This document shows, piece after piece, positions 3,550 through 46,024 of a DNA stretch of 64,000 nt. The DNA comes from Marsupella aquatica (Eukaryota > Plantae > Marchantiophyta): positions 10,625,832 through 10,689,831 of the forward strand of contig OZ316897.1 in assembly GCA_973895155.1 (NCBI GenBank), in the 5' to 3' direction. Each line of letters begins with the position of its first letter. Within the stretch, counting starts at the first letter, position 1. Position numbers and translations under genes: made by a program. Below the pieces are notes generated by a model. The model made no database searches, was not told the origin of the DNA, and worked only from the letters and a program-made list of their open reading frames with translations.

Positions 3550-4737
3550 CGTTGGGAGGCAAGGCCAAGTAGGTGCGGAGGTTGAGTTCCAAGGGTGCTT
3601 GGCCCTAGACCATCAGTGGGGCAAACCGGGCATTGGTTGCTAGTATCGGGGCCATTATGGTCCCGGTGTGTTGGGACAAGCTTTAGGACAAGCTACGCTA
3701 TTTGGGCCATGAGCATGTCCTAGGGTCAGGGCGGTCAGTTGGTGATGGATAGGTACGAGGGGGAACCCGGGCCGCGCCCAAGGAAGGAGTTGTTCTGGAC
3801 GAACAGTGGGCGTGGTTCTGGTTCCGGCTTATAGCATCGGGAGGACCTATCGCTGACCTATTTACCAACGTCTGTTGAGCTTGAGTTAGGATGCTAGACT
3901 TGGCGAGTTTTAGATCGTGAAGGGTTACTTACTGAGGTGCTTGGTTGCTTGTGAAGACCCTGAGGACCGCTGAGTAGCGGTTGTGTTGGAGAGCAAGTGC
4001 GGCTTCGTATGGGAGGGGCCGTTGGTGATGCAAAGGGCACTAGGTTGCTTGCTCGAGGTATTTTGTGGAGGCGTTCGGGCACCAGGGGCACTTGGGGGTG
4101 AGTGCTGGGATTGGTGAGGACGTTGGGTGGCAAGGTCCACCACTCCGCCATGGCTCATGACTTTGGCTCGCCCTTAGCCCCCAGGGAGACACCACTCCCC
4201 TCATATATGCTTCTGCAGACCTGCCACCCCCGGACCTACTTTGGCCCCCCACCTTGACCCCAACCCGCATGTTTGGGCGCACCACCAACTGGAGATGCCC
4301 ATAACTTTCTAGTTAGGCGTCCGTAAGCGGAGTGCGTTAGCTCTTCCTCAGATGCCTAGGTCCTCAGATCCCATCGTGATCGGGCCAACCCGGTGTTCAT
4401 GCCTAGGTCCTCAAATCCCATCGTCACCCGAGACCCCCGATCGGCCAAACCCGGATCAGGCCATAACTCGTGCCCCAAGTGTCCATTGCCCATGGATTGA
4501 ACTCCATTGGCCTTGGGCCCATTCCGCTCAACCCGACCAGCCCTCGGCTAGTCTAAGTCCGTAGTGTGTGTCACCAGCTTAGTACCTTGCCTTCACTAGT
4601 GCCACGCCCCATTGTCCACAAGTCTCCCCATGCTGAGTCCTCCCCGGGTGGCCGTTCCGGGCCTGGACCATAGGGGAGCTCAGCGTTGAAGTCAGCGACG
4701 CCGGAACTAAATGTTAAGGTAGTCGAGTTCAATGACT
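3550..4737. mobile_element. Left half of a nested pair of AGT...ACT LTR-like elements (3' part of inner copy 3550-4144; 5' part of host copy 4145-4737)
   Basis: 3550-4144 aligns with about 45427-46024, and 4145-4737 aligns with 44533-45189. The terminus CCACCACT at 4144 is followed by CCGCC, and the terminus ...GACT at 4737 is followed by TTTTG. Confidence 0.8.
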
Positions 4738-5534
4738 TTTTGTGTAGGCATGCAATTTGCTGTTGGAATGTAGCTAGCAACTGGTTGCAGGGTCTCTTGG
4801 TGATTGGTAGGGTGAGGGGAGGGTGAGTTTAGTTAGACTCCTTCTATCTGTTGTGAGGAAGACACCTTTGATCACGTTACGCACTTTCCTCCTATATCAA
4901 ATATTGTGATGCATTTGGCTGGCCAGGAATGGTCAGAATTTTGACAGATCCAAACCAAGGACTTTTAATCAACTCCTGGTCTTCTCCAAAGCTCTTGATC
5001 ATCTACATGCAATTGCTTCAACATCACCACTGAGTAGGAAACATGGGTGACTTACTCAGGCCAAACTGCTATTGGAACGGGAACAACACAGAGTTCTGAG
5101 ACTTAGTGGAGTCCAACTTACTATTACACATTACTGAGCTGTATTTCCTTGGTCCTACCAATTTTGTCTTAAACACTTTCACTAGACACTTACCTCTGAT
5201 TTCAGTTCTTGGTAGACCTCACTCTTTAGAGGTGTGGTTGCCACTGTTGTTCACTTTTAGTTTACCATAGTTCTAGTTTCCATTAGGCTTCACCGGAGAC
5301 TTCTTTAGTACTGCCATCAAATTGCTGAATTTGTCCTGCAGTGGCACTCAATCGCTTGGTTTTCGTTATACTCTAGACGCTAACATCCATTGTATTACTT
5401 GGGTTTGGTGGATGGATGTCTATTCTCCTTTGGGGCTGTGGTTTTTTTCGCCCTTGATGGCCTGCCGCCTTTTGGCCTGCTTGTTCCCGTGCTTGTTTCA
5501 CGCGGAATAAAGGTCAAATTTAAATTAAAAAAAA
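4738..5534 (+). mobile_element. L1-type LINE, 3' part (ORF2 C-terminus, 3' UTR, poly-A)
   Basis: Translates LCRHAICCW at about 4740-4766 and IWLARN..F at about 4913-4940 (L1 ORF2 C-terminal W..RN motif). AATAAA at 5506 and an A-tail ending at 5534. Confidence 0.75.
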
Positions 5535-6184
5535 GATACACCAAATTTTGTGGTTTGAGATTCCTAGTGTACTACCCAGCAAACAAACGTGACCTTTGTT
5601 GTATTCAGGCAAATAGTACAATATTCCAATTGTTGAGTCAATACCATGTTTTCCTGTGGATGAATGGATGGGATTAATTTGTGTGTTTCAGGAAAATCAT
5701 AAGGAGTGGAACGTGGTGGGAGTCAAGGCAAAGCAACTGATTAAATCACAGAAAGATAACAATATCATCATGACGCTCCGCTTGTTGAATTGAGCCTGTG
5801 TTATCCTGCAGATGATGGATGGGATTAGTACATCATGGGTTAGGGCACCTCCGATAAGGTTATGGCAGGGACAATAGCACCTTGCCATATGGCGGGCGAC
5901 CAATCAGAAGAAACCTCAGGTTAAGTACTGGGGTTAAGTTAACCAGTATAGGAAAAGGGGGTCATGGTAGGAATACAAATAGTTTGGGGATGAGTTGACA
6001 ATAAGAATCAGTCTGGGGCTCAGGTTAGTAAAAAATGGTTTGCCAAAATGTCACTCCAAATTTGACAATGCATAGATCTAAAGGTCACAACCGGATTGTA
6101 CAAGTCAAGCACAAGTGGAGCCTTTGCAACTTGCCATAGAGTGGACGAGTCCTAGTACATCACTATCTTGTTTTATTAGAAACA

Positions 6185-7192
6185 CTAGCTTGATGCCTGT
6201 GCATTGCACGAAAGATTTTGAGGAGAGAGCAAGATGTTGAGGCGAAGGCAAGATGTCAAGGAGAGGCCAAGATTTTGAGGCATGCGAAGATGTTGAGGTG
6301 AGGGCAAGATGTCAAGATGAGGAAAAGATAGGGAGGTGAGAGAAAGATGTCAAGGCAAGAACAAGATGTCAAGGAGAGAAAAGATGTTGAGGGTGACGGA
6401 AAGATATTCTAGTGAGATGAAAATGTCAAGGTGAGCAAAAGGTAAGATGCCGAGTTGAGGAAAAGATGTCCAGGTAGCTGAGAAAAAGATCTCAAGGAGG
6501 GGAATGATGTCAAAGGTGAGAAAATATGTCTTGGTGAAATTAAGATGTCAATGTGAGAAAAAATGGCTAGATAAAAGAAAGATGTCAAAGTAAAGTTGTT
6601 GTGGCACTGGTGTTTAATAACCTGTGCATTGCACATAGAAATTGGAGACGTCAGATAACGACCACCGCATCTATTCAACCCATGTTTATTATTTTAGCCA
6701 ACTTTTTATTCTTTTATCCAATTTTTTCTGGCCTCCCTTCCCCTGCCCCCCCCCCCCCCCCCATCCTCTCCCTTTGTTTCCTTGCTTTGCCCTCTTGCCC
6801 TCCTAGTGCCTTGTCCTTCCTCCTCCCCCTTTTTCTTCCCTTTACCACCATTAAAAAGACTAAAAAAGGAGTTGAAAATGGGAAGAAAAGACAATTAACC
6901 TCCAAAAAATTAAATCCTCCACTTTAAGAGTAAAAGCCAAAATAATCCTCGTAGTGCTCTCTCCTTGCCAAAAACCATCATCTCAAGTCAATCTATTTTC
7001 ACTTTAATTTTCCATGCCAAAATGTACTCTAAATAGACCATAAAATAATCTACTTCCACTTTAATGCTCAATGCAAAAAAAGTACTATAAGCAAGTTACA
7101 ACATAACTACAGTAAATTGTTCCCCCCCCCTTTTTTTCCTTTTGTAACAGGACAATGGACCTTTTGGCGAGATTCATTAGTATAGTAGTAGA
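6185..7192 (-). mobile_element. Non-autonomous Helitron carrying a minisatellite
   Basis: On the minus strand, A|TCTACTACTATACT at 7192, then the hairpin GTGCAATGCAC and CTAG|T ending at 6185. A second hairpin with CCAG lies at about 6607-6635. Confidence 0.75.
6225..6590. repeat. Minisatellite, about 18-19 bp unit (GGCAAGATGTCAAGGTGA-like)
   Basis: Recurrent AAGATGTCAAGG / AAGATGTTGAGG. The reverse-complement array is at 30275-30680. Confidence 0.85.
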
Positions 7193-7890
7193 TAAAATAT
7201 ATATTTATTGTACATTATTGAAGAATATTGAAGTTTTGACAAAGTAAGAAAAAAGTGAACAGAAATGGGTATGGACTCTGAACTACTGTAGGTATATGCT
7301 TGATGGACCTAGTGAAAGGTTTATTACAATTTGGACCCCCTTTCACACTTTTTTTAGATGTTCTTGTCTAGGAGTGACTTGAGGACATCAACATAAGATG
7401 GGTCTACTCTTATAAGTAGCCAGTTGTTGATACTGAATCAGTGTTATGCTTTTAGATCATAAAGCTAGATGACACTAAGTTCCACGATCCAGAGATGGGA
7501 GCCTCGTGAGAGATTTTGGTCCCTCTGTACATATGATATGGATTTTAGATTTGCGTTGCGTTTCATTGTCATGTTTGTGACAGATCTTGCACTCTGTTCA
7601 GTGCATTGAGCATCAACAATCAACTACTCAGTAATGCAGCTAACACTGAAAGGCTTCCAATGATCCTACCAGTGCGGGCAAGTTCCCTGCCCCCTTTTAC
7701 CAAAGGACATTGCCCTGGTTAGTCTATTGAGGTCAAGTGCCCCAGACGTCTTGTAAAGTCCTCCTAAGTCACTCCATCTTTGTAGACTGTTGATCAATGT
7801 CCTATTTCATTGTCATGTTTAGTGAGAGGTCTTGCACTCTTTCAGTCTATTGAGCATCAACAATGAACTATCTTTAGTTAGTAGTGTAGC

Positions 7891-9841
7891 AGTCGCGAAT
7901 ACAACTTTCACCTACTCGTAATTGCTCTAGCGTTGCCTAACTCCAGCGTTGAGCCCCTCTTAGATTTGCTACCATCATAGCCATTAGGGATGCGACTAAC
8001 AAAGAGGAGGCTAGTAAGAACAAGGACAAGACTTGAGAAAAACGCGCTCCAATTTAATTCTATTGGGCCCATTGCCGATCAAGGAAAAATGAACTATTTT
8101 TCCGACGGATCACCATAGGGGCCCGAGAAGCCCCACATGAGCCCATCATGGGCTGCATATTTCTTGGCCAACGGACCCAGGGGCCAAAAGTTATGGCTGA
8201 CTCAAGCCGCATACTTGTAGTTTGGGCCCGTTGCCGATCACGGAAAAATGAACTATTTTTCTAACGGATCACCATAGGGGCCCAAGAAGCCCCACATGAG
8301 CCCAATCATGGGGCCACATATTTCTTGGCCAACGGACCCAGGGGCCAAAAGTTATGGCCGACTCAAGCCGCATACTTGTAGTTTGGGCCCGTTGCCGATC
8401 ACAGAAAAATGAACTATTTTTCTGACAGATCACCGTAGGGGCCTGAGAAGCCCCACATGAGCCCAATCATGGGGCTGCATATTTCTTGGCCAATGGACCT
8501 AGGGGCCAAAAGTTATGGCCGATTCAAGTTGCATGCTTGTAGTTTGGGCCCATTGCCGATCACGGAAAAATTAACTATTTTTCCAACGGATCACCATAGG
8601 GGCCCAAGAAGCCCCACATGAGCCCGATCATGGGGCCGCGTATTTTTCGGCCAACGGACCTAGGGGCCAAAAGTTATGGCCAATTTAGACTCGATTAGAG
8701 TCGCCGCGCATCGATGGACCAAGAGGGGGTTGCCTGGACCAAGAGGGGGTTGCCTGGACCAGATCGGGGTTAGGGCCATAACTTTTAGCCCCCTATGCCA
8801 CAATTTGTGCTCGAGGCCAAGTTACGAAAGGTTTTCGATTATCTTCATTTCGAGCTAAGTGGCAGGGCCCACGGACCCTTGGGTAGGGGGCCAAAGATAG
8901 GGGACCAAAGCTGGTCCGGGGGTGGCAGGTCCCCAGAAGCATATATGAGGGGAGTGGTCCTCTCAAGTTTGAGATCGAGCTGATCGCGATCGACGAAGAT
9001 ACGTCGTTTCGAGTTTTGAAGCGGAAACAAACATAACTCGACGACCGGATCTCCGTTGGGGGAGTTCTTGGGCTCATTGGAAATCTAATGAAGAAAGATA
9101 CCTCATGGTGCTCTTTGATTGTGCATTGGATGGTTTTGTTTTTGAGGCTTGCAATGGGGGGAGTCCCTCTTGCCGATCCGAAGTCGAACAGTGACCAAAC
9201 CGCATTTGGTTCCCACGGGGACCTGATGTTGGAGAGGTAGAACCAAGTAGACTCTGGGGGTTGCCGTTGAGATCTGGTCCCGATGCATGGTGAGAGGTTG
9301 AGCGGAACCCGGTTTCGCCGAGAGGTGGATAAGATCTAGAAATTGAATGGTCCAGGCGTGTTACTACTAGTTTGTGACAAACTGAGATTGGGCCATGGGC
9401 ATGTCCTGGAGGCAGGGCAGTTAGTCATTGACGGATAGAAAGTGGGGAAGCTTGGGTGAGATCCGATAGATAGACTGTTCCGGACGAACAGTGATGTCGA
9501 CCTTAGTTTCAGCTTATGGCAAGGCCATGCGGGCCTGGGAGGCTCTATCCGCTGACCTACTTACTAACGACTGTTGAGCTTGATGCAAGACAATGGTCTT
9601 GGGGGTTCCGAGATCAAGACGGATTCTTACCGGTTGGTTGGTTGCTTGTGCAGATAGTAAAGACCGTTGAGCGACGGTTGTGCTAACGAGGGCAAGTGCG
9701 GCTTCATATGGGAGGGGTTGCTAACGACAAGGAATATAGTCGGAGAGAACTTGCCCCAACATTCCGTGTTAGTGCAAGGTTCGACTTGTTTCAAGGCTGA
9801 GAGACAAGTTTGGACGGGCACGTGGTGGGAGGGCCACCATT
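7891..9841 (+). mobile_element. Solo LTR-like element with AGT...ATT termini (divergent member of the 3550/44234 family)
   Basis: Starts AGTCGCGAA and ends CCACCATT, flanked by the TSD GTAGC (7886-7890, 9842-9846). The block GCATATATGAGGGGAGTGG is shared with the other copies. It sits in the second copy of a local ~245-bp duplication (7560 and 7805), which supplies the empty site. Confidence 0.75.
8063..8683. repeat. Tandem repeat, about 160-bp unit, nearly 4 copies, inside the LTR-like element
   Basis: Units start TTGGGCCC(A/G)TTGCCGATC at about 8063, 8222, 8383 and 8544. Confidence 0.9.
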
Positions 9842-11179
9842 GTAGCTGATGCTGAAATGCATAAAAACAACCCCACCAATATACGTGGACAAACTCCCTG
9901 CCCCTTTTTATTAGAGGACATTGAGCTGGTCTGTTCTGCCATCCTTGAGGGCAACTCTCCTCCATATTCAAATGAATATTTAACCTAATACTATGAGAAA
10001 ACAATGGAAAATGGCTGTAGCACTGCTATTAAAGGGGCAAGTGGGTTCTTGAAAGGTGGCAGTCACCAAAATAGGCTATCAAAAGTATAAAATATGGTTG
10101 CCCTGTTATGCCGGATTAGGGTTTAGGCATTTTAGCTTCATTTGAGGGTTACCCTGGAGGAATGAGAGACTAAGATTGTCTCCACATTTTTCAGAGATCA
10201 AAAGGAAACCCTCACCACCTTGGTTTTGAGGATATTGAAATACACACCTTAGCACAGTGGTCAAGGGTTTGATGGGGATGGAAGATCGAGGGCTCAAAAA
10301 CTGGGAGTATATGCTAGCCTTTTACATGGAGCCAATGCTAAGAAATTGAAACTTTAATGTGAGGGTACTTCTGCGACCTGGAAGACACTACAAAACCGAT
10401 TTTAAAAAAATAAACAAAAAGATTAAAGGGATTCTGTTTAGATTAGAAAAATTAGGAAAAACCAAAAATAAACTGTCCTAAGCAGATTAAAAATAATTAC
10501 CTTTGAAAAATAGCATTCCTGAGCAGGTGAGGTGGATTGGTCATAAATGAAGGTAAACAAAGTAATGAAACCTGCCCAAACTGCTGTGCTAAAGAAACTT
10601 GCAAAGGAAACACTACAGTAGTTGGGACCGTGTGTGCGAAGAGTGAATGTCACCTTTCTATTCTAATTTTGGCACATTAGGGACTTGGGAATGTTTTGGT
10701 GACTTACCTTCCAAACTTAATGGTCCAGATCTGATCATACACAGATCTAAAGTCATAGCACGACAATACCAGTCAAATAGACAATTCCTGATGATCGGAA
10801 GCTTCTGGTAGGCTTCTCATCTTTTTTAGTGACTTGTCACAATCAATGGTCGAGATTTGATGATGAGCTATCTAAGGGTCATAATGTGAAGGTACAAGTC
10901 AAGAACACTCTCGGAAGGTTCTAAACCCTCGATAAGTGCCACCAGCCCAAAAATAATATAAAAAACACTGCATGGAACTACTGTAGTTAGTGCACAAAAG
11001 GTCATCGCCTTCATTTTTCCGACCACAGGCGACGAGACACCTCAAATGGACATGTCCAGGAGTTTGACACCTCCGACTGTAATTGAGGACCACCTTTACC
11101 GTACTATCCCAGTCTGTTCTACTGGACTCTGACTGCAGGTTTCCCGCTTTACAATCATGCTGTGTCCGGGCCAGAGTGA

Positions 11180-11334
11180 TGACTCAGCAGACACGTGGAT
11201 GCCATTCGTTTGTGCGCAGAGACTTCCACCTGCGAAAAGCGCGGGTAGAAACACGAGAAGGAGCATCCAGTTACCAGTCGCCAGCAGGCATCAGCGCTCC
11301 TAAGCTCTGCTTTGATCTAAATCTAAGTATAAAT
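11180..11334 (+). promoter_or_regulatory. Candidate promoter of the USP gene: TGACTCA, ABRE/G-box (GACACGTGG) and TATA
   Basis: TGACTCA at 11180-11186, GACACGTGG at 11190-11198 and TATAAAT at 11328-11334, upstream of the ATG at 12094. Motif match only. Confidence 0.4.
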
Positions 11335-12093
11335 TAGTTTCAAATTACTTCCGAGCTGATAGCTGATTAGTCCCTGACAGGATTAGTTGCTCTTCGATCG
11401 TGATGCTCGTCTTCCTCTCTAACTGCAGTTAAGTAAGAGACTGACATCGACGGCCATGAAGCCCCTCCCTCTGGGGATCTTATCGTTACCGCCGTCGATC
11501 TGAGCCGGAGGATGACCGGTCGAGGGGAAATAAACCCCAGTAAAGCAGACTTGAAGGGGGCAGATGATCTGTCGATTGATTGATCGATTGCACTCAAATG
11601 AAAGCTCTGGAATTCGATTTTGATTGAGATTGATGAATGTAAACAGTGGGTTGAGGAGTGGGTTGAGGTCGTTGGGAAGAATGTGGATGAGCTGTCTGAA
11701 TTCAAGCCTAAAGCTTGTTCCGTATTTAGGACCGAGTGTTGTTCGTGCTGCCTCGTACAGAACGTTTGGATTCTTTCTGTTAGCTCCTTCCACATTGCAA
11801 TTTCATCGATCTGATTGTGAGCAGCAGAGCTCTGTTGGGTCTTCAGTTTTTGAGCTACACTCCAAATGATTGCATCGATCTGTTAGTAGAGTCGGAGAGC
11901 TCTGTTGGGTCTGAATTATTTAGCGACATTCCAATCGCATCAATCTGTTTGTAGTAGAAGTAGTAGGAGATCGTGGTTGGGTCTTGAGCATTTGAGCTAC
12001 ATTTCGCGAACTAAAGCTCTTGCTGATCACCTTATTGTTCCGAATTAAACTGGAGTTCAGTCTTCTATAGAGGAGAGAGAGAAAGAAAAGAAA

Positions 12094-15000: not shown

Positions 15001-15924
15001 CGAGAAGTTCATGGAGTATGCTGAAGGACAAACAGAGGTGAGTCTCTCGATGGCGTGAAAAATGATTGGGATTCATTTTCCCTCTATTTTGATTGTTGTG
15101 GCGTGTCTCACAATAGCAAGTTAGGGAGTGTTTTGGTAGCGATGTGAGAAACGACTTATCGTCAAATTTACTCTCCTCAGTTTTTCCTGTCAGTGTATGT
15201 AGCATGTGAATTGTATTTTCCTGTCAGTGTATGTAGCATGTGAATTGTAAACTGCTGCTTGACCCGTTCTTTGGGTGCTAATGGTGGTTTTCGAGAAATA
15301 AATCGGACTAGTTAAGTGTAGAAGACTATGTTAAATTTATTGTGGATTTTTCAGATAAAATGCGAAGGCATGGTGGTGACCGGCGAGACACAAGAAAAAG
15401 TGATTGAAGGGCTGAATGCCCTCCGAGCTGATGCTGTTGTTGTGGGCACGCATGATCGGAGTGCCGTTTCAAGGTGAGACACGTCTGCTCTAACCGATTC
15501 GTTTTTACCCAAAATAAGAAGGTCGCCAGTCTACACAGATCACAAATACGAGAATTCGACGACATACGATTTTTTGGCGTGACTGATAGAACCAGATATA
15601 GAAATTCTGTTGTTACGTGGTTCCCATTTCAGGGTAAGAATTTTTGCTCTGTTCTTTGTTGAGAGATTGTTTATGGAGAAGTGCCTCCACTCTTGTCTCT
15701 ATTGAGCAATTCAGATTTTAAAGAATTCATTAGGTTGGCAGATCATTAACAACTTGTGTAGCATTTATCAGTTGTATGTAGTAACACATAATTTCTTGCG
15801 TTGCAGGACATTCTTGGGTAGTGTGAGTGACCATTTGGCTCACAATAGTCCTTGCCCTCTCATAGTTGTGAAAACTCGCAAGAACATTTCCGATCCTGAA
15901 GTGGGACATCAACACGCAGTATGA
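12094..15924 (+). CDS. Universal stress protein (UspA family) with two tandem Usp domains, 364 aa
   Basis: Exons 12094-12265, 12550-12722, 13714-13832, 14091-14247, 14610-14721, 14913-15037, 15355-15473 and 15807-15924, all GT-AG and in frame. Motifs RRVMIAVDDS...LLGSISDYVLHNAPCTVAVV and RKIVIAVDES...FLGSVSDHLAHNSPCPLIVV. Confidence 0.92.
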
Positions 15925-17750: not shown

Positions 17751-17896
17751 ACCCATACTGAATTGGACGATTCAACGGGCCAGAAATCCTTCTCCCTGCC
17801 CTTGGATATACAGGCCTACTACAACCCATACTGAATTGGACGATTCAACGGGCCAGAAATCCTTCTCCCTGCCCTTGGATATACAGGCCTACTACA
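17751..17896. repeat. 73-bp tandem duplication inside degenerate coding-like sequence
   Basis: ACCCATACTGAATTGGACG...GGCCTACTACA at 17751 and 17824, with diverged ATACAGGCCT units continuing to about 18020. Confidence 0.85.
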
Positions 17897-20490: not shown

Positions 20491-20657
20491 ATGCTGCAAT
20501 AATTTCAATTGGTTGTTTGAAGAACTCTTGTGGTTTAATTTTAATTTATTTATTTTTACACGCTTTCTATATATGAACTTATGTGTTTTGTGCATTGAAT
20601 ATGTTTAAAACATATTGATGTGCGAAATCACCACTGACTTATTTGTGTCCCTTTCAG

Positions 20658-24343: not shown

Positions 24344-24688
24344 TGTTGAGCATAGACGACAATCGCAACGACAAGCTCATCAACCATCCAACGCACAAGA
24401 GTTGACACAGAGAGATACGTGGTTCACCTCCACATGAGGCTACGTCCACGGGAACACACATGAGCTTTACTGCACTCTAGGCCGACCGGCCATACCAAGC
24501 ATCCACAACGCAAGCTCTCTCTATCTCTCAACTAGCTCCGTAACAATGAGCCTGAGTTCCCACTCTCCAAGCAAACACCGCTTGGTTATAGAGTGTGCAC
24601 AACATGACTAACCTAACCAAGTCTACGACGAAGGTTAGCCTTAACTATGGTATAGTCGCAACTCTAGACCTAAGAGTAAATCCTAACA
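24344..24688. mobile_element. Solo LTR (345 bp) nested in the Harbinger element
   Basis: TGTTGAG...CTAACA with a perfect CCCCT TSD. Similar to 991-1361 and 43457-43814. Confidence 0.88.
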
Positions 24689-29999: not shown

Positions 30000-30711
30000 T
30001 CTACATATATTTTGCTATTTTCTTATGATCTCATCAACAACATGGACCCAAAAGCAAGATTTGGATCACTACAACAACATTTTCAAATAAGAACACTTCA
30101 GTGCATCACCACTTTTGCTCAAAAAAGATTTTCACTCAACTTTATTTCTCAGCAAATTTGTGTTTAATGGTACTTTTAAATCTACTACTCAACTACAATC
30201 TTTGTGCAACCACAACGCCTTCTCTTGAAAACACTTTTGCTTTGAAAACATCTTCACTCAACCACACTTTCTCTCATCTTGACATCTACACTTTCCTCAA
30301 CATCTTTGCCTCACCTTGACATCTTTCCCTTGCCTTGATAACTTGCCCTTTCCTCAACATCTTTCCCTCTGCTTGACATCTTTGCCTCTGCTTGACATCT
30401 TGCCCTCACTATGACATCTTTGCCTCACCTTGACATCTTTCCTCACCTCAACATTTTTCCCTCACCTCAACATCTTGCCCTGTCCTTGACATTTTGCCCT
30501 TGCCTCAAACTCTTTCCATCCTGTCCCTGTCTTTGCCTCTCCTTGACATCTTTCCCTCACCTCGACATCCTTGCCTCTCCTCGACATCTTGCACTTGCCT
30601 CAAATCTTGCCTTCACCTTGACATCTTGCCCTTACCTCAACGTCTTTCCCTTGCCTCGACGTCTTGCCTTCACCTTGGAATCTTTTGTGCAACACACATG
30701 CATCGGGCCAG
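30000..30711 (+). mobile_element. Non-autonomous Helitron with the same minisatellite 3' module
   Basis: A|TCTACATATA start at 30000. The 3' end TGTGCAACACACATGCATCGGGCCAG|T matches the 6185 end. CTTGACATCTT minisatellite at 30275-30680. Confidence 0.65.
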
Positions 30712-34300: not shown

Positions 34301-34853
34301 CATCGCCTCGAGTGATTTAGGTTGATCTGGCCTGGTTGGGTAGAAGGAAGCAGCGCGGCTGAACTCGATGTCTCTTGCCTCAGCCATAGCTTTCCACTTG
34401 ACTCAAATCATTGCCTTGAATACTGCTTTCCCACACGATCTTCAGAATCACCCTTCAAAACAAAATTTCTTTTGATCATATCACAGCCTTCATAAGCTTG
34501 CTCTCGGCGCGACCACAATGCTACATCCTGTCGTTGCTTCAATGTGACTCATGTTCTCTTGGTGGTTCAAACTACTAGCCTTCTCACTCCCAATTCAATT
34601 CTCCTCCATAACTTGGAAATCCTTAAGAGAACATTCATTCATCATAGCCATAGGGAAATTCCTAAAAAAAATTCATGATCAAGCTCAGTTGGTCTAGAGT
34701 CGTGCTGATAACGTGTTGAGGAATGATGTGGGAAATGATAATGAGATTCCTCTCTATAGAATGAATGGGTGCATCTCTATATATAGTCTCCGTCCGAGTT
34801 ATCCTACGGTAACTATGGTTAAGGTAACCATGGAGTCTAGTTAGGGTATAACA
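31370..34853 (-). mobile_element. Non-autonomous LTR retrotransposon with short LTRs (3.5 kb), primer site matching the tRNA-Ile 5' half
   Basis: LTRs 31370-31511 and 34714-34853 differ by 2 substitutions and a 2-bp indel. TGTT...AACA termini, CTGCA TSD, PPT CTCCCCCT at 31512 and PBS at 34682-34713. No recognisable gag-pol. Confidence 0.92.
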
Positions 34854-35529
34854 CTGCAATCTTTCAATACACTGTCTTTTTTGTTTTGTTCCAAGGCGGA
34901 GTTTGGGACATCAAGGGAAGTTTGCCTTTGCCCTTGGGTCTCCACCTTTACTAGTGTCTTATCACAGGAAAATCTCACCAAATGGTATCATGACACCAAT
35001 TATTTTGAGTACTACAAACCACCTTTACTAGTGTCTTATGACAGGAAAATCTCACCTAATAAATGGTATGATGACATCAATTATTCTGAGGACTACAAAA
35101 CAAACGGTCCATGGCATAAGAGTTGGCTCTTTATAGCCACTTTCCCACCCAGCCTATGACCCCATTGACCAGAATCTGAGGGAGATCTAACGGACAGAAA
35201 CTAGTCTAGTACAAATAGATGAAGAACATTACTAATATATTCTCCTTCTAGTGCGAAATGGAAAACTCCCTATATATTTAGCTGATGTCACCAAAAAGGC
35301 TGTTGCCTTTTCATGCGCCGCCTTGCTTCCCTGGTCCAGCCCATTTAGTTGACTGATATACGCCTATACTACTGCTCCATTGTGCCACCATTCCAGCTGT
35401 CAGTACGTTGACTTGCCTAAATACCGGGGAAAAAACAATAAGCCCTCCCCAAACAGGGTAAGCTCGGTTTGTGCCAAACGAAAGTATGCATTTCGTGTCT
35501 GGAGAAAGACCCCGCACTGTTTGTCTCTT

Positions 35530-35760
35530 GTCGACTGTGCCGTCTGCAATCTGCCAAAGTGGGTGACTGGGTCCCATAATAGACGGCGGGGATATCGGGA
35601 AAAGCAGAAGTGCATCTCAGAGCCTTTAGATTACTGATAGAGGTTTTGTCGTATATCGACTGCGCCGTCTGTGGTCGGCCACTCGAGGTGACTGGGCCCC
35701 ACATTACGGAAGCACTACAATCGACTGTGGAGCATTCATTTCAGAGCCTTTAGATCACAA
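35530..35760. repeat. Diverged ~125-bp duplication upstream of the LRR-RLK
   Basis: TCGACTG(T/C)GCCGTCTG...GTGACTGGG...TCAGAGCCTTTAGAT occurs twice. Confidence 0.7.
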
Positions 35761-37507
35761 AGCATTGACTGTGAGACTGAATCACTGAATCTGAGCGCTT
35801 CTCGAAAGCGGACAAATCCGGCTTGGGAGAGGTGCAGACAGGACGGGGCCCGTTTGGGGATGTGCGTGTCGACTGTACAGTGGGGAGGAGACTCCCTTTC
35901 ACTGCTTTCTTCAGCTCTTCAGCAGAAAAGAGGACTCGAAGAGTCCAGGGACTGTTTTTCCGTCAATCTTATCACTGTGTGATTTTTTAATTGAAGTTGT
36001 GGGAAGTTGGGAACACGCTTTCACATCGTACAGTGCATTTCTCGTCACTTTCTCGATGCTCGCGAGGGGCTTTTAGACCTCCCAATCCATCTCCTTTCTT
36101 TTGAGATTCTCAAGGAAAAGATTTGGGTCACTTTCGAGGGGGTGGTAGCGATTGCTCTTGGCTTTCATTCTGAGGACTAGATGGGGATGGATAGCAGTGG
36201 CACCCGAGCTCAGAACGCACAACTTCGATTGGGCATCCACTGACGGTGGAGACGGTGGACCGGAGAAACGTGTTCCAAGTCATCTGAAGGTATGGATTTC
36301 ACTGAGTTAGAGCAGTTGTTTGTACAGACTTATAATCCGTTGGGATTGTGGGATGGTCTAATTTGGTCAGTTGATCGGACCGTGTCCGAAGACTTTTTTG
36401 TATCTTCTATTCTGTGCTGTTAGAGGTGCCATCCATTCTTCTGATTATCGCGTCAGACAAGGTGCGAGGGATTGACTGGAAATTTACCACTCGTGTTAAA
36501 CATTTATGCTTCTGAGTTCCAGCTTGGGATGTGGATTGTGAGGAGTCATCCTTCTAAATGTTCTGAAACCCTATACATGGGACTGCATATGTGTACATTA
36601 AGAGCCGGGGGGCCGGACAAGTGCAAATGATAAAACAACCTTTACTGTAGGGCCGAGCCATATGGGAAAGCTTGCACATTTGGTTACATTGATGTTCATT
36701 TTCTTAGTGCTATGAAGCCCACACCACCCTCCAGACTTTCCTTTTTGAGAAGCGAAGAGTTGAGGTGAAGAGCTATGGATTTCTACTAACTCGATAGTGT
36801 CGTCCGTGTCAAAAGCCTGGGTTGATAGGTCAGTCCCCTTGACATTGGACGCTGTCCTGGATTATTGTGATGTGTACTCTGTGACCGTGGCGACCAGATG
36901 GGATTCTTCGACACTCCTTATAGTTAGGGGAAATGTGATGCTTCGATTATTGAGTAGATAATCTTTCCTCTGGAACTGCTGACAAATATCTGTCAGGGAG
37001 GGCTTGCCATAAATTTTGTCATAGGAGACCTACTCAAGTGCGTGGAACTTTACGGGTAGTCGTGTGCAGTCAAACTTTCGCATATACACTAATCTTTCCG
37101 GGACTTAATGTACGGTGTTGGCTGCTCTGTCCGGGGAATATTTGGTATTGGATGATATACCATGAAGGCAATCGGAGCTCAGTAAGCGCTTGAAGGTTGC
37201 ACTGCCTCACAATCCAAAGTTCTAAAGTCCGTAGTTCTAAGTCCGTACGTTTGTGACTTTGCAGATGTGCGCCGGAGCTAGCTTATGTTAGGTTGGGAGC
37301 GCCACCATTCACACTCTAGGCATCTTGTAGATTCAGATCCGATTTACTGCCCATCACCAAGAAAATCGGATGTAGATAGTCCTTGCCAAATGATTCAGGT
37401 CTCAATCATGGCGGAGTATCTTCAAGCGGCGGTGATTCGATGGGAGCGAACAAAGGCATTTTAATTCTGGATCTGTTTACTTGAAGGGCTGAGCCGTCGC
37501 TGTCTGC

Positions 37508-39898
37508 ATGAGGTTGACGTTGGGCAGGATGCATTTTTTTGTAGTCCTCAGTGTCCTGTTCCTGGCTGGGTTCCAGAGCCCTTTAGCAGCGCAGGAGGCA
37601 GCGCTTAGTTCAGGCTTGAGGAAGGATGGAGAGGCGTTGCGGATCTTCAAAAGTGAGATCACGTGCGACCCATCAGGAGCTGTACGAGATTGGGGAGCTC
37701 ATGCAAATCCTTGCCGATGGAATGGTGTGGAATGCGCTCGAGTCGATGGGATGGACAGGGTGGTCAGCCTAGAGCTATGGGGATTGGAGCTGGAGGGTTC
37801 CATCTCGTCCCAGGTAGGGCAGCTATCGGAGCTCCGAAAGCTGGCCATTGTGGGCAACAAGCTCACAGGGCACATCCCTTTGGAGATTCGGAACTGTCAC
37901 AGACTAACTCATCTGGACCTCCGTGCAAACCATCTGTCTGGTTCAATACCCTTCAGTCTGGCCGATCTCCCCCTTTTGGAAACCCTGAAATTGTCCGAGA
38001 ATCAGCTCACGGGGCCGTTGAGTGCACTTCTTTATGACAAGAAGGGGTACAGCAGCTTTAATCCTTTCCGTATCCTGGGAATACAGACAAATTCCGTGGC
38101 TGAGTTATGTTCCCAACTGCGAGTAGTGGATTTGGCTCATAATTCGCTGTCTGGGACGATCTCATCTGCTATAGGGGAATGCAGCAAGCTGGTGGAGCTG
38201 AGCGTGAACAACAATAAGCTCAGTGGACCGATTCCTGCCAGTCTCTCCGCCATTCCCCAATTACGGTCTTTGCTCCTCAACGGCAACCGTCTCGATGGGC
38301 CTCTGCCGGCTCCCATAGCGATCGGCTGCAAGAATCTCCAGTATCTGGATGTGTCCGACAACCTTTTGAGCGGATCGATTCCATCAGAATTTTCGGCTTA
38401 CAGAGGAGTTCGGCACTTCAACTTCGCCAGCAACCAACTGGTCGGTGCAATTCCTCTGGGCAGGTGGAGGGTCGAGCAGATGGCTATGGAGGGTTTTTTC
38501 TCCAGTAACCCGGGCTTGTGTGGCTGGCCTTTAACTCAAGTGTGTGACACCACACAACGAGAGAGTTCCAGTGAGGATTTTCAGCTACAAACCCCGGGGA
38601 GTCTATTCTACAAAGGTTGGAGCTTTCTTGCCGGCCTCTACTCGAGGTTGTACGAGAGGTCTCAGACTTTGGGGCAGCAGCTGGGCAACGTGCGTGTGCG
38701 AGGTGGCTTTGGCTGGAGGAGTAAAGCTGGGACTCGGAGGTCCATGGCAGAATCAGGCTCACCAGCAGCTTCACCAAAAGCTTCACCAGCAGCCTCCCCA
38801 GTATCTACACCAGCAGCCAGTCCTGCAAAAAGGAATCGCCACACAGTACGAAGGTGGGCTTTAGGGCTAGCTTTGGGGCTAGTGGCTGGTGCCATAGCTG
38901 CTGCTCTGCTTGCTGTTCTGCTCCGCCTGTTTGTCTTTTACATGCACAAAGCACCCCATCTACAGGGCCCCATCATTTTCCACCCCAACATCTCCCCCAA
39001 GATGTTACTGTTCTTGGAGAGAGATGAGTCCCTCCGCGAGGCAGATTTGGTGGGCGAGGGAGGTGCAGGACGAGTTTACAAGGCCGAGTTGGAGAACGGT
39101 ATGGTTGTGGCAGTCAAAAGAGTGGTGGTGAAAGAGGATCAGAAGGGCCTGTTTGGGAAGAAGCAGATTCAAGCAGAGCTTGAGACTCTCGGATGCATCC
39201 GTCATCGAAACCTGGTTGTTCTTCTGGCTTATGTACACAAACCAGACTGCCATCTCCTCCTCTACGAATACATGCAAAATGGATCTCTTTACCATGTTTT
39301 CCAGAAAGCAAATGCCGGAGAGCTGGAACTTCCTTGGCCCATAAGGCACCGGATTGCTTTTGGAACCTGCCAAGGATTGAGCTACCTTCATTTTCTGTCT
39401 AACCCCAGAATTGTTCACAGAGATTTGAAGCCGTCCAACATTTTGCTGGATGATATCTTTGTCGCCCATGTCTCCGATTTTGGGCTGGCCAAAGTGATTC
39501 CGGATGCCGACACACATGTGACCACTGGAGTGGCTGGCACTGTGGGGTACATAGCGCCAGAGTATTCTCAAACCTGTCGGTTCACTGATAGGAGTGATGT
39601 GTATTCCTTTGGAGTAGTGTTGGCTGTCCTTCTAACAGGCAAAGACCCCACGGATCAGTTCTTCCACACCGTGCCCGGGGGAAGCATTGGAAGCTGGTTG
39701 CATGATCTTCTGCAGAAGGGAGAAGGTGTTGACGCCATTGACCCAAAGCTCAAAACTGGTGACAGTGGTTTCGAGGCGGAGATTCTCTTGGCCATGAAAA
39801 TAGCGGTTTTTTGCACCAATGCAAATCCAAACGAGAGGCCATCGAGTAAGGAGGTACTGGTCATGCTCGAGCAGATTCGGAAGGATGAAGAAACCTAA
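37508..39898 (+). CDS. SOBIR1: LRR receptor-like Ser/Thr kinase, SOBIR1/EVERSHED-like, 796 aa, intronless CDS
   Basis: Signal peptide, LRRNT (PCRWNGVEC), about 9 LRRs, an SP-rich stalk and the TM WALGLALGLVAG (GxxxGxxxG). RD kinase (GEGGAG, VAVK, HRDLKPSN, DFG, APE) with SOBIR1-like segments FGLAKVIPDADTHVT and YSQTCRFTD. Orthology judged from recalled sequence, not a search. Confidence 0.88.
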   Translation: MRLTLGRMHFFVVLSVLFLAGFQSPLAAQEAALSSGLRKDGEALRIFKSEITCDPSGAVRDWGAHANPCRWNGVECARVDGMDRVVSLELWGLELEGSISSQVGQLSELRKLAIVGNKLTGHIPLEIRNCHRLTHLDLRANHLSGSIPFSLADLPLLETLKLSENQLTGPLSALLYDKKGYSSFNPFRILGIQTNSVAELCSQLRVVDLAHNSLSGTISSAIGECSKLVELSVNNNKLSGPIPASLSAIPQLRSLLLNGNRLDGPLPAPIAIGCKNLQYLDVSDNLLSGSIPSEFSAYRGVRHFNFASNQLVGAIPLGRWRVEQMAMEGFFSSNPGLCGWPLTQVCDTTQRESSSEDFQLQTPGSLFYKGWSFLAGLYSRLYERSQTLGQQLGNVRVRGGFGWRSKAGTRRSMAESGSPAASPKASPAASPVSTPAASPAKRNRHTVRRWALGLALGLVAGAIAAALLAVLLRLFVFYMHKAPHLQGPIIFHPNISPKMLLFLERDESLREADLVGEGGAGRVYKAELENGMVVAVKRVVVKEDQKGLFGKKQIQAELETLGCIRHRNLVVLLAYVHKPDCHLLLYEYMQNGSLYHVFQKANAGELELPWPIRHRIAFGTCQGLSYLHFLSNPRIVHRDLKPSNILLDDIFVAHVSDFGLAKVIPDADTHVTTGVAGTVGYIAPEYSQTCRFTDRSDVYSFGVVLAVLLTGKDPTDQFFHTVPGGSIGSWLHDLLQKGEGVDAIDPKLKTGDSGFEAEILLAMKIAVFCTNANPNERPSSKEVLVMLEQIRKDEET

Positions 39899-42800
39899 AC
39901 CGAAGTTGCTTTTTAACTCTACTCTTTGTACCTGACTTGTGGCACTAGTGGATGTAGCTTTTGAAATAGACGGGGTGCAGTTTTTCTAAATTGTATATGT
40001 GAATTTTCTGGTGTCGAATTGTTATCTGTGGATCCGCAAAAGATGAGGGGAGCTTTGTTTAACCCCTTTGACTCATTGGGCATACTTATAGTTTGGCATT
40101 TGCTGTTATCAGGGGCCCAGTAGTATTGGCGTGAATGGTAATCTGAATAAGCTGTAGTGGGATACTGCTGTTCAAGTAGGTTTGCTCAGGCCATCATAGT
40201 CGAATGCATCTTTTTTCGCTATTGACCACAGTATTTGCAGAAAGGACATATTTGACATTGGAAGAATTGATGTGTGTCATCTGAGCGGGCCGTAGTGTGA
40301 AACTGGTGACCCAACAGTATCTCTGGGCTAATATCCAGATGGATGGTCTTACAACTTGAACCGCATTCTTCTACTGTCAAAACCTGTATCAGGCATTTAC
40401 CCAAATTTACCACTAGAACTCATTCGGTACCGCCCACAACATGTATAATTTGTGGGCTGACAGAGGAGTTCATTGGACGGTGTAATAAATTCAATTGGTT
40501 TCCAGGATTTGTAATTGGACCAGACCGGGAGAGGGTCTTGTTTTAGAAAGTCGGAAAATATCTAAATCTTGGTCAGTATCTAGATCCATGTCGCTGACAT
40601 GTCGGAACACGTCAGATACACCCCAAAGGTGTACTTTGAGGTCGTTTCCAGTGACTTCTTCTATTTCTAAAGACATTGTGAGAGCAGATTTGCTCGTTGA
40701 TTAGCTAGAGGTTCGAAGTCTGCAAGTGAGATGAAATTCTAATGAAACGCGGATGCTGATTCGTCACTGGAGTTGGAGGTAGAGTTTGACATTGAACTTC
40801 TTCTCAGCTGCTGACGAGTTCGATCGGTGCAGTAGGAAGGGTGTTCTCATCCAATTTTGAATGTTCTCGTTCACCGTGTCATAAAAAATCCCACTTAATA
40901 TACAGTATTTTAAAGGACGAAGGGAGAGCTGCTGACACAATGAATAAATCGACAAGCCGTCTCAATTGTGAATGCTCGGACAACTCAATGTACTAATGTG
41001 TACATGGTTGGATGGTTAAACCACAATTGAGAGCTATCTATAGCTCTCAACATACACACCCACATTCACCTATAGTATGGGTGGAGAGCACAAATTCGAA
41101 TTTCTCGCACTCACTGTCATCTCATCAGTCCAGCATATGGGTCAATAGGGTTCAAAATGTAGATCTCGCCTAGATTTACGTTCTTCGAAAAGCAAAATCT
41201 AAAACTAGTCAATTGTAAGGAAAAAATCTTAAAAAACAATTGCAACCACCTGATTGGTTAGGGCCGGCCAGGTATATGGGCAGGGGAGTGATGGCATGCG
41301 GGCAGGAGTGGCTGGAGGCATCGTCGTCTCCCAGCCACTGACCGGCAGTCACTCAGGTTGCAAACAGCCCTTAAACTTTGGCCAGTGAAGATTCTGTGTC
41401 CCAAAGAAACTCTATGCAGCAAAGAAACGCCAATGCATGCCTTGGACTGCCTCACTACTTCCGTCCTCTTCTCTCTTGTGCGAGTTGCATGGAAAGTTCA
41501 ATTTTCTTCTCGATGATGCGGCGAGACAGATTTCAGGTCTCCAAACACTTCTCCGTACTCATGCTAGCAACCGGGACCTCTTTGTATCACCAAGGTATGA
41601 TTTCCAAAATCGAACACATACGATATCAGTTTAGTTTATAATTTGTGTTTTCGATGTATTACTAATTCCTTCAAGGGTGGACATGTACATTAAGTTTTCT
41701 CTTCACATAATTTCATTCAATCTGATAATTATAATATAGATCAAAGGCTAGGAGACAGGAGATCGAAACGGAAGTGAAATCAGCTCATTACATCCAATTT
41801 AGTCCTCACGGGAAGAACCAATGAGATTGACTCTTTCCCAAAGACAAATATATCCTACAATCGGAAAGAAAACTTTTTGCTATCATCCGACCAATTGAAT
41901 GAAATGAAATGAATATATCCGTCCAAACTCTTTGCAGTCAAGAAGTCATCAAAACTTTCTAATTGAAGGGATGAGGTGTATCTTGTCCCTATCCTAGTAG
42001 TGATCTATTCCTCATCCCTTTGTAGAGACATCAGGACTTTGCCCTTTCGGGTCAATGGCGCCAGTGTAGTGCGTTCCAGGCTTTCTAGATGAACTTCAAA
42101 TGGCTTTCCGGTTGTGACTGTAAAATTTACTTTGCGTCAACAAAAGTCTTACCCCAAACTTTAGATAGCTATACTAACTGCAGCTGAATTGAGGTAGAAG
42201 ATCTCCTATAAACCAAGAACAATATAAAGAAAGCGGAGGATGAGCAGCTGTGGTACAGACTTGGGCAGAGTCAGATACATGGCTAGACGATAGGAAGAGA
42301 AGAGAAAAGCAAAGAAAAATTAGGAGAAGACTGCAGCCAGGGCGAGTTGGACAATGGTAGCAGTCGGCAAGCAAAGGGGTGGCCAATACTGAAGCAATCT
42401 AATCACTGCTGAGATTGAGCAGCTCAACTGCAACAAGCGCAACTGAATAGCCGACGAATTCCCAACGAATGCGGAGCAGAATTCAAAATCGCATTTGTGC
42501 TCAGCCGCTGCAATTGTGCTCTCTCTGTGTGAAGAAAGGAGCGATTCAGAGCAAGCAAATTCTGAACAAACGGATTGAGTGAAGTTCTTTAGTTTGTTCC
42601 ACTCAACCACATACAACTAAATTGAAGAGCAAAAACAAAAGTAAAAACACAGCTAAAATTGTATGTATGCTCTCACCCTCTTTCTTTGCAATCCACAAGC
42701 TACAGTGTAGCAATTGCTATATTCTTCCCCACAATAGTCACCCGCAACCTCAGCACCATGATCAGCACCATTGATCAGCACCATGCAACAGGAGTTCAAG

Positions 42801-43260
42801 TTGCAAACCTCACCTCGCAACTTGAACTCACAGCTTGAACTCACAGCTTGAACAACGAACTCTATGTACAATTAGCTCAAACTATCGTTGACTGTAAAGG
42901 GTGATAGAAAGGAAGGAACCAACCAGGGAGGTAGTAGGCATGAAAACGAGGAGTGTGAGGGGACCACACTCCCCACTACATGCCTTTGTTAATTAAAGGA
43001 GTGCCTCTTTTGTTAATTAAAGGAGTGCCTCTCACCTCTAGTCAGCTCACTTTGGGTGTAGCCAACTTGCAATCTACTGCCCGTACTCACTCCCAATTCC
43101 ATGGAACCTAGCCCTAAGTAGGGTGAGGGTGGCTGAGCAGGGGAGGCTAATGAGGAAGCAGGGATGGCCTATGAGGGATGGAGAGGCATGTTAGGCTTTA
43201 TTGTGGGATCTGGAGTTACTATGCAGCCATAGTCAGGTACTTGATTAAAGTTAGATGTGT

Positions 43261-43422
43261 CACTACTATATTCACTAGAAAAATTTAGCTTGTGAGTAGA
43301 ACTTAGGCTCATTTTTACGGAGCTATGAGATAGGGAGAGCATAGACACTATATTCACTAGAAAAATTTAGCTTGTGAGTGGAACTTAGGCTCATTTTTAC
43401 GGAGCTTTGAGATAGGGAGTGC
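43261..43422. repeat. Tandem duplication of about 81 bp
   Basis: CTATATTCACTAGAAAAATTTAGCTTGTGAGT...GAGATAGGGAG occurs twice. Confidence 0.88.
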
Positions 43423-43456
43423 TTAGTCTATGGAGACTCAATATGATCGATGAGCC

Positions 43457-43814
43457 TGTTGAGTACAGTCGACATTTAGAACGGCAAGCCCAATCATGAT
43501 TATTCAACGCATAAGTAGTCAAGACAGAGAAATTCATGGTTCACCTCAACTGAGGTTACGTCCACCAGAACTCATGAAAGCATTAATATTTATTGCACTC
43601 TAGACCCGTCAACCATACCGAGTCTTCACAATACTAATTCTCCCTATATTTCAACTGGCTCTGTAACAATGAGCTTGAGTTTCCCCGATCCAAACAAACA
43701 CTACTTGGGGATATAGTGTGCAACATGACTGACCTAACCAAGTTTGCGACTAAGGGTAGCCCTAAGTATCTTATAGTTGTGTCTGTAGACCTAAGAGTAA
43801 ATTAATGCCTAATA
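43457..43814. mobile_element. Solo LTR (358 bp)
   Basis: TGTTGAG...CTAATA with a perfect GAGCC TSD. Same family as 24344-24688. Confidence 0.85.
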
Positions 43815-44233
43815 GAGCCAAGAGTTCAGTAAATGTTTTTTGTGTTTTCCAAATTGTGAACATAGCATGTGTGTTCCTTGGCAGTTGCACATGTGCATGC
43901 TGTCTTTATATAGTACAAAGTTGTTTACTCAACAATTATGGTTTATATCAGAGCATGCTTGCTTGGGAGCTACAATTTTTGTGACGGTTTGCTTAGCACA
44001 CATTATTGTTGGTGTTTTCAAGAGTTTTATAAGTACATGAACTTGGATGTTAGCCCGGTTCATAAGATAGACTAGTGTTACTTAGGGCATTATAAAAGTA
44101 CTTAGACTCATTGATCAAAGTTTGGAGGAAGAGGTAATCAAAGATTTTTCCATTACAAAGGTTTTGGTGGAAGTTGAGAGGATTGAATTTCTTTTCTAGA
44201 GGAGAAAGAGATTTTGATGTTGTGTGGAGCCCG

Positions 44234-46024
44234 CCCAACGCAAGCTCCCTTGGGAGACTGAACAGCGCCCAACGACAATTATATTACAAAATTAAAGGTA
44301 GAGATTGCCTATTTATTGGCTTTGCAGCTTGGTTGCTGTTCGGCAGGATTTGACAAGCGGGCGAGCTAACACCCACAAACCCCGAGAACCCATGGAACCC
44401 CCAGACCCAGCTGAGCTCAGGAGGGAGTAACCCTTCTCAAGAGATTTCCAACGCACCCAAGAAGTCCTCCAACGGACTTCCCGTTGGGGAGATATCGTCG
44501 TTTCCGTTTGGTGCTTTCCCTTAGTGTCGCGACCGCCACGGCTCACGACTTCGGCTCGCCCTTAGCCCCCAAGGAGACACCACTCCCCTCATATATGCTT
44601 TTGGAGACCTACCACCCCCGGACCAACTTTGGTCCCAAAAGGTTTGGCCTCCAACCCGGATCCTATCACGCATATTGGGCGCGCCACAAACTGGCAACGC
44701 CCATAACTTTCTCGTTAGGCATCCACAAGCGGAGTGCCTTAGCCTGTTGTGATCGGGCCGACCCAGTGCTCATGCCTAGGCCCTCAGGTCTCATTGCCGC
44801 TCAGGGCCCCTGACCGGCCCAACCCGGATCGGGCCATAACTTGCGCCCCAAGCATTCGTTGCCCATGGCGTCAACTCCATTGGCCTTGGGCCCAAGAGAA
44901 GCTCACGCTCAAGCCCTCAGAACTCAAAGTCCGTTCGGGGGTCCAGACGGTCGACCTTGAGCCCGGCCCATTTTCCCCCTGGACCCGACCAGCTCTCGGC
45001 TAGCCTAAGTCCTTAGTGTGTGTCACCAGCTTGGCTCCTTGCATTCGCTAGTGCCACGTCTCGTTGCCCACAAGTCTCCCCATGCTAAGTCCTCCCCGGA
45101 TGGCCTATTCGGGCCTGGACCATAAGGGAGCTCGGCGTCGGAGTCAGCGACGCCGGAGCTAAGTGTTAAGGTAGTCGAGTTCCGCGACTGGCGGTCACAA
45201 CACCAAGGGAAAATGTCAAACGGAAACGACAATATCTTCCCAATGGGAAGTCCGTTGGAGGACTTCTTGGGTGCGTTGGAAATATCTTGAGGAGGACTAC
45301 ATCCTCCTGAGCTCAAATAGTCTAGGGTTGCTATGGGTTCTTGGGGTTTGTGGGGGCTAGCTCGTTCGCTTACCAAATCCTGCCAAAATAACAGCCAAGC
45401 CGCGTTCAGTCTCCCAAGGGAGCTTGCATTGGGGAGACAAGACTAAGTAGGCATGGAGGATGAGTTCCAAGGGCACTTGGCCCCTAGGCTATCAGCGAGT
45501 GAGAACCGGGAGTTAGTTGTTAGATTCGGGGCCATTTTTGTCCCGACGTGTTGGGACAAGCTTTAGAACAAGCTATGTTATTTGGGCCATGAGCATGTCC
45601 TGGTGGCAGGGCGGTCAATTGATGATGGATAGGTACGAGGGGAAACTCGGGCTGCACCTAAGGAAGGAATTGTTCTGGATGAACAATGGGTGTTGGTTCT
45701 GGTTCCGACTTATGACATCAGAAGGACCTATCGCTGACCTACTTACCAATGTTTATTGAGCTTGAGTTAGGATGCTAGACTTAGGGGAGATCTAGATCCG
45801 GTTTGGGTTACTTACCGAGTCACTTGGTTGCTTGTGCAAACAATGAGGACCGTTGAGTAGCGGTCGTGATAGAGAGCAAGTGCCTCTTCGTATGGGAGGA
45901 GCAGCAGGTGCAAAGGGCATCAAGTTGCTTGCTTGAGGTATTCCGTGGAGGCGTTCGGGCATCAGGGGCACTTAGACGTGGGTGCTGGGATTGGTGAGGG
46001 TGCTAGGTGGCTAGGTCCACCACT
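44234..46024. mobile_element. Right half of the nested AGT...ACT LTR-like pair (inner copy 44234-45189 minus; host copy 45190-46024 plus)
   Basis: About 44237-44537 and 45190-45432 form an inverted repeat. The terminus ...CGCGACT at 45189 is followed by GGCGG, and the terminus CCACCACT at 46024 is followed by CAAAA. Confidence 0.8.

Follow-up and report, generated by a model that had tools for sequence, protein, structure and literature searches.

A probable 40.7-kb inversion marked by split transposons in the liverwort Marsupella aquatica

Ordering and dating genomic rearrangements by means of nested transposons and mismatched target-site duplications (TSDs) is standard practice in grass genomics: elements insert whole, so that split halves and split TSDs record a later rearrangement. 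Here we follow this logic in a 64,000-nucleotide stretch of DNA from the liverwort Marsupella aquatica (GenBank assembly GCA_973895155.1, contig OZ316897.1, positions 10,625,832 to 10,689,831 of the forward strand; hereafter, the window) and put at about 0.8 the probability that positions 3550-44233 of the window (40,684 bp) have undergone a real paracentric inversion, specific to the lineage of this leafy liverwort, a relative of Calypogeia. Unlike in the grass-genome cases, three independent elements close both breakpoints at once, which is an uncommon completeness within the same kind of evidence. Both the kind of event and the use of nested transposons as barcodes are well known, and the locus is a new, cleanly resolved instance.

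Among the closest described systems, the inversions of the Drosophila melanogaster group have reportedly been explained (Ranz et al. 2007; PMC1885836) by a model of staggered breaks followed by end joining. The liverwort locus resembles these inversions in that no repeat is shared between the breakpoints, an ancestrally single sequence is present in inverted form at both ends, and the event is balanced; it differs in that the duplication is only 7 bp long and stems from one breakpoint only. The inverted duplications of that Drosophila study are reportedly often much longer. As in inversions caused by ectopic recombination, transposons lie at both breakpoints and TSDs are split between the ends, but here the elements at the two breakpoints are unrelated, and what remains of them are complementary halves, not recombinant copies. 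Transposons of the hAT type generate 8-bp TSDs. Alternative transposition of Ac/fAc at maize p1/p2 (PMC8225341) likewise yields a short inverted duplication at both junctions; in the liverwort, however, no transposon ends lie at the junctions, and the duplication measures 7 bp, not the 8 bp of hAT elements.

A fully resolved small inversion in a bryophyte, with base-exact breakpoints and a polarity given by three split transposons and an outgroup, should help both annotation and the surveying of liverwort genomes for structural change; it is an ordinary structural change that leaves the understanding of inversions as it was. If polymorphic, the inversion would suppress recombination locally.

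Split elements at base-exact breakpoints

Each breakpoint cuts an element whose remaining part lies at the other end of the segment, in the opposite orientation: the inner of two nested repeat copies is divided between 3550-4144 and 44234-45189, and a remnant of a long terminal repeat (LTR) retrotransposon between 991-3549 and 43189-44233 (Table 1). The heptamer CGTTGGG, which occurs once in the outer (host) copy of the nest and in a third copy of the same repeat, now forms an inverted pair at both breakpoints, and the sequences that adjoin at both junctions are unrelated. The separated pieces were formerly contiguous, the breakpoints are placed to the exact base, the duplication is 7 bp long, and there is no homology between the breakpoints. 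The first-pass annotation of this DNA had proposed a 40.7-kb inversion on four observations concerning split transposons and TSDs, and all four are present in the sequence.

The repeat copies belong to a family of approximately 1.4-1.5 kb with AGT...ACT ends and 5-bp duplications. Comparison of the window with itself (plus strand throughout) aligned 3554-4145 with 45432-46025 (83% identity) and 4145-4737 with 44533-45189 (82-88%), and matched 44234-44538 to the reverse complement of 45189-45433 (83%). Rebuilt from their pieces, the host copy (reverse complement of 4145-4737 plus 45195-46024; 1423 bp) and the inner copy (reverse complement of 44234-45189 plus 3557-4144; 1544 bp) can be aligned over their whole length (1386 columns, 84.5% identity). 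At the exact site of the break in the inner copy, the host copy is uninterrupted (...GCTTGCATTGGGGAGAC...), and at the exact site of the interruption in the host copy, the inner copy is uninterrupted (...CCGTGGCGGTCGCGAC...). Since the inner copy has GGCGG only once at the latter site, GGCGG/CCGCC is a true TSD of the inner copy, as had been suggested; the proposed split TSD of the host copy, TTTTG/CAAAA, was seen as well. The halves of the inner copy, said earlier to be complementary and to share only CGTTGGG/CCCAACG, are indeed colinear with the host copy, which has the heptamer once. The third copy (7891-9841; duplication GTAGC) is diverged and has in its interior a long tandem array (~7950-8700) that is missing from the other two. 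The A+T-rich 56-bp insert at 44268-44323, found in the inner copy only, can be used as a locus-specific tag for reads.

The host copy itself interrupts a 5'-truncated LINE (long interspersed nuclear element) within the zinc knuckle of ORF2. The sequence CTLCLGTIETIPHIFLL, the reverse complement of 46030-46080, is continued in frame, via one TTG of the duplication, by the sequence CRHAICCWNVASNWLQGLL... at 4743-4823. When 1.84 billion representative proteins were searched with the 112-aa piece encoded at 46142-46477 on the minus strand, 24 relatives were found, including a full ORF2 (P0159) with Exo_endo_phos endonuclease, RVT_1, and zf-RVT domains. Residues 146-254 of the database protein P0145 aligned with 46354-46028 (minus) of the unmodified window, residues 256-274 with 4743-4799 (plus), and residues 281-364 with 4829-5080 (plus). 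Since the Pfam zf-RVT domain of P0145 (residues 184-263) straddles the alignment break at 254/256, the domain spans the split in the LINE. When database proteins were compared by local tblastn with the reconstructed DNA, stops being kept, a single alignment without gaps carried residues 146-274 of P0145 over the join (combined E = 1.9e-43), and P0146 likewise spanned it in a single alignment. The CCHC knuckle, C-TL-C-LGTIETIP-H-IFLL-C, was interrupted by the host copy and no residue was lost. Thus, the earlier claim that the LINE halves join into one CCHC zinc knuckle is borne out by P0145 and zf-RVT, whereas the 'poly-A' of that claim comes down to a run of eight A (5527-5534). The separate LINE pieces of the window had no match in Pfam, and a TSD of the LINE itself was looked for in the window and not found.

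The reconstruction was made with a local script that reversed 3557-44233 of the window DNA and then excised the elements stepwise. After the reversal, the inner copy sits between direct GGCGG...GGCGG; after excision of the inner copy with one duplication, the host copy sits between direct CAAAA...CAAAA; and once the host copy is also excised, the LINE reading frame is continuous. This in silico restoration of the nested elements with direct TSDs had been put forward as a check of the inversion, and its outcome agrees with the proposed order of events, LINE, host repeat, inner repeat, and then inversion, which follows from the nesting and is borne out by the stepwise excision. At the other end, the reversal yields one 3604-bp element consisting of TSD, LTR, primer site, internal region, polypurine tract, LTR, and TSD (TGCCT...TGCCT), with a predicted ancestral join ...GGAGCCCG|GCAAAGCG.... 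The chance of a 5-bp match at predefined ends is approximately 1/1024 in each case; three exact matches were found, and together with the base-exact colinearity they are far beyond chance. The event is balanced, with a gain of at most 7 bp and each transposon piece present once, and no genes were broken by the inversion.

That the second breakpoint lies inside an LTR retrotransposon remnant is new relative to the first-pass annotation, which had the inversion break a Copia gag. The LTRs, the primer site, the polypurine tract, and the AGGCA duplication establish an LTR retrotransposon at the breakpoint; gag is unproven, as none of the open pieces of the element matched any Pfam family. The distance from the primer site to the break is 279 bp, which places the break in the leader or the region of the gag start. 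The two LTRs are homologous, inverted relative to each other, and 42 kb apart in the present order, with 69% identity over all aligned columns and 77-88% within blocks; the LTRs are old, and the internal 2.5 kb is a remnant. The structural features of Ty1/Copia elements are present, namely an LTR pair with TG...CA ends, a 5-bp TSD, a primer site, and a polypurine tract. Copia elements usually have a primer site of the initiator-Met tRNA type, for which the canonical sequence is TGGTATCAGAGC; relative to this type, the site in the remnant has a 4-nt insertion. By eye, a KHVDIGYYFIR motif (1708-1800, minus) resembles the tail of Copia pol; an Atlas search with this 31-aa pol-tail-like piece gave no match. 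Gag and pol domains in the Copia order were not found in the 2.5-kb internal region, which is too short for a full pol.

Several further observations concern this element. The 5' LTR contains an 80-bp tandem duplication (units 95% identical, within 43265-43426) and an insert of approximately 350 bp (43457-43802) that is missing from the 3' LTR. The window contains no second copy of the element, only a 338-bp relative of the 5'-LTR insert at 24344-24681 (75%). At the high-copy repeat at ~3377-3446, many contigs match up to 3446 and then run into other sequence (ACCTAACA...), so that a further element is nested in the internal region. In one run (X3), a contig of approximately single-copy depth skips 2379-2893 and 2981-3383, with a few base differences nearby; this contig may represent a second haplotype or a paralogous internal region of the LTR element.

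Outgroup gene order and the reality of the arrangement

The closest proteins come from the liverwort Calypogeia fissa (78% for the J20-type DnaJ protein and 84% for the leucine-rich repeat (LRR) receptor kinase, with P0021 as its orthologue). In C. fissa, for which two overlapping loci were merged into 40.4 kb, the methyltransferase (1.8-6.5 kb), J20 (10.2-12.2 kb), and kinase (27.9-30.6 kb) genes all lie on the plus strand. In the window, the kinase (37.4-40.1 kb) and J20 (48.4-50.1 kb) genes are on the plus strand and the methyltransferase gene (61.4-57.1 kb) is on the minus strand. Thus, the kinase and methyltransferase genes share a strand in C. fissa and in the reconstruction, unlike in the window. 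With the methyltransferase on the plus strand, the signed gene order is (+1,-2,-3) in the window and (+1,-2,+3) in the reconstruction, so that the reconstruction is one reversal away from C. fissa and the window two. A comparison of gene order and orientation in relatives had been suggested earlier, and the orientation of the C. fissa kinase relative to the methyltransferase matches the reconstructed one.

The reversal of the J20 block is a second, separate event in one of the two lineages. The J20 and methyltransferase genes are in tandem, 3.5 kb apart, in C. fissa and convergent, 7 kb apart, in the window (48216-50081 vs 57058-61777); no split transposon that would mark the ends of this reversal was found in the window. 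Outside genes, no alignable conservation was found between the window and C. fissa, and the universal stress protein (USP) gene was not found between J20 and the kinase in the latter. Marchantia was uninformative as an outgroup: on its chromosome 4, J20 and the kinase orthologue have widely separated locus tags, and the kinase lies more than 10 kb from J20.

Four runs from two studies contain the left stretch, and their short contigs were placed on 1500-6500 of the window. Two of them (X2-13 and X3-20) cross the junction between the repeat and the LINE (4737/4738) without any difference. In all four runs, the summed contig depth of the repeat family exceeds the depth of the unique flanks by a factor of 10^3-10^4, which indicates a very high copy number, depth being an indication and not a measure of copies. 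A search of metagenome contigs with the junction 32-mer gave 0 matches, which is uninformative for a plant.

Several points weigh against the inversion. None of the contigs listed over 1500-6500 bridges 3549/3550, and read-level support for the two junctions is absent from this contig evidence, which covers 1500-6500 only. Only three anchors are shared with the outgroup, and J20 requires a further inversion. Furthermore, the LTR pair is strongly diverged and the protein remnants lack a Pfam match, and for these reasons the identity of the LTR element rests on its structure; bases may have been lost at the break in this element. The want of a bridging contig, along with the position of one breakpoint within a family of such high summed depth, would fit a plant that is uninverted and an assembler that flipped 40.7 kb. 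Yet the window contains no N; the junctions join non-homologous sequences, so that a misjoin guided by repeats is not to be expected; flipping a contig would not turn a 7-bp motif found once in intact copies into an inverted pair; and the orientation of the kinase departs from the outgroup in the very direction that the inversion predicts. Given these points, an assembly error is unlikely, and we infer that the arrangement is present in the plant and not in the assembly alone.

Proposed staggered breakage and the rival mechanisms

The proposed history has two ancestral landmarks. At the first, the 1.4-kb high-copy repeat would have inserted into a 5'-truncated LINE (with TTTTG duplicated), and another member of the family would then have inserted into this copy in the opposite orientation (GGCGG); at the second, approximately 40 kb away, would have lain the 3.6-kb degenerate LTR retrotransposon (AGGCA). 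Two double-strand breaks, one in the inner repeat copy and one in the LTR element 279 bp past its primer site, are envisaged as having released the intervening segment with the USP and LRR receptor kinase genes, which end joining would then have put back in the opposite orientation. On the repeat side, the two strands would have been cut 7 nt apart, and filling in of the ends would account for CGTTGGG at one junction and for CCCAACG at the other. Two breaks, one of them staggered, joined by end joining are the best reading of the locus, the repair pathway being deduced from the junction signature, which speaks for a staggered break repaired by end joining and not for recombination between repeats.

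The abundance of the repeat family, together with the inverted copies that adjoin the right breakpoint, brings to mind ectopic recombination between inverted repeat copies. In such an exchange the recombining flanks should be alike; here, the internal region of the LTR element has no similarity to the repeat copy, the repeat pieces are complementary parts of one copy rather than two chimeras, and the comparison within the window found no homologous inverted repeats spanning both breakpoints. Because the exchanged breakpoint flanks share no similarity, recombination between inverted repeats is in effect excluded, and we give it next to no credence.

The inverted 7-bp duplication at both junctions could also be read as a TSD left by a DNA transposase acting through alternative (reversed-ends) transposition, as in the transposon-induced inversions of maize (PMC8225341), and DNA transposons may lie nearby. 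No transposon termini, however, abut the 7-bp duplication, and the adjoining sequences, ...CACGCTTTGC and ...GGAGCCCG, do not form an inverted-repeat pair and consist of internal sequence of the LTR element, so that a transposase origin appears very improbable.

Replication-based template switching, by fork stalling or microhomology-mediated break-induced replication, with the 7-bp copy as a by-product, would account for a short junction duplication without long homology. It sits poorly with the balance of the event, in which every transposon piece is retained once and the gain does not exceed 7 bp, and with the lack of visible microhomology on the LTR-element side of either junction; we regard this mechanism as unlikely, and prefer end joining of a staggered break.

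Before the inversion, the nest was a quasi-palindrome of approximately 3 kb with arms of 590-830 bp (82-88% identity), and the staggered break lies in the ~900-bp stretch between the 'B' arms of the host and inner copies. Any role of the quasi-palindrome in the break is speculation, and it seems doubtful that nests of AGT...ACT copies in opposite orientation act as fragile sites from which inversions of this genome arise.

Genes and feature coordinates

The inverted segment carries the USP and LRR receptor kinase genes, which are now oppositely oriented relative to J20 and the UbiE-type methyltransferase outside it (Table 1). The first-pass annotation had USP and 'SOBIR1-like' genes flipped relative to J20; the change of orientation stands, whereas what is shown for the 'SOBIR1-like' gene is that it encodes an LRR receptor kinase, and of the USP gene only the last exon is seen. 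Look-ups of the exact products of J20, the kinase, and a 35-aa open reading frame across the left junction found none on record.

Table 1. Window coordinates of the features at and around the probable inversion.
Feature	Position	Strand	Remarks
LTR-element TSD	986-990	-	TGCCT on plus strand, AGGCA in element orientation; reverse complement of 43184-43188
3' LTR	991-1361	-	371 bp, TGTTAG...CTCAACA
Polypurine tract	1362-1388	-	AAAAAAGAGGCAAGGGGGAAATTGAAA then TGTTAGCC; directly upstream of 3' LTR
LTR-element internal region, 3' part, degenerate	1389-3549	-	contains nested high-copy repeat ending at 3446
Left breakpoint	3549/3550		one copy of the 7-bp duplication, CGTTGGG, at 3550-3556 (+)
Inner repeat, distal part	3550-4144	+	now inside inverted segment; 83% to 45432-46025; continues reverse complement of 44234-45189 colinearly
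Inner-copy TSD	4145-4149	+	CCGCC
Host repeat, first part	4150-4737	-	begins AGTCATTGAACT on minus strand
Host-copy TSD	4738-4742	+	TTTTG
LINE 3' part	4743-5534	+	knuckle end, ORF2 tail to ~5119, untranslated tail to 8-A run
USP gene, last exon	15706-15921	+	Pfam Usp E = 1.1e-4, profile 119-141 of 141; inverted cargo
LRR receptor kinase gene, intronless	37508-39898	+	796 aa; Pkinase and LRR families; inverted cargo
LTR-element TSD	43184-43188	+	AGGCA
5' LTR	43189-43934	+	746 bp, TGTTAG...CTCAACA
Primer-binding-site-like sequence	43939-43954	+	TGG[TTTA]TATCAGAGC; degenerate
Leader or possible gag start	43955-44233	+	reaches right breakpoint
Right breakpoint	44233/44234		second, inverted copy of the 7-bp duplication, CCCAACG, at 44234-44240 (+)
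Inner repeat, proximal part	44234-45189	-	956 bp, including 56-bp private insert 44268-44323
Inner-copy TSD	45190-45194	+	GGCGG
Host repeat, second part	45195-46024	+	ends ...GGTCCACCACT
Host-copy TSD	46025-46029	+	CAAAA
LINE ORF2 fragment, 5'-truncated	46028-46507	-	stops in first half of zf-RVT knuckle
J20-type DnaJ gene	48223-48840	+	anchor outside inversion
UbiE-type methyltransferase gene	57101-61777	-	anchor outside inversion

Two short degenerate tandem-repeat arrays (6190-6560 and 30264-30704), both within the inverted segment, are inverted relative to each other and align at 74-82% identity at many offsets.

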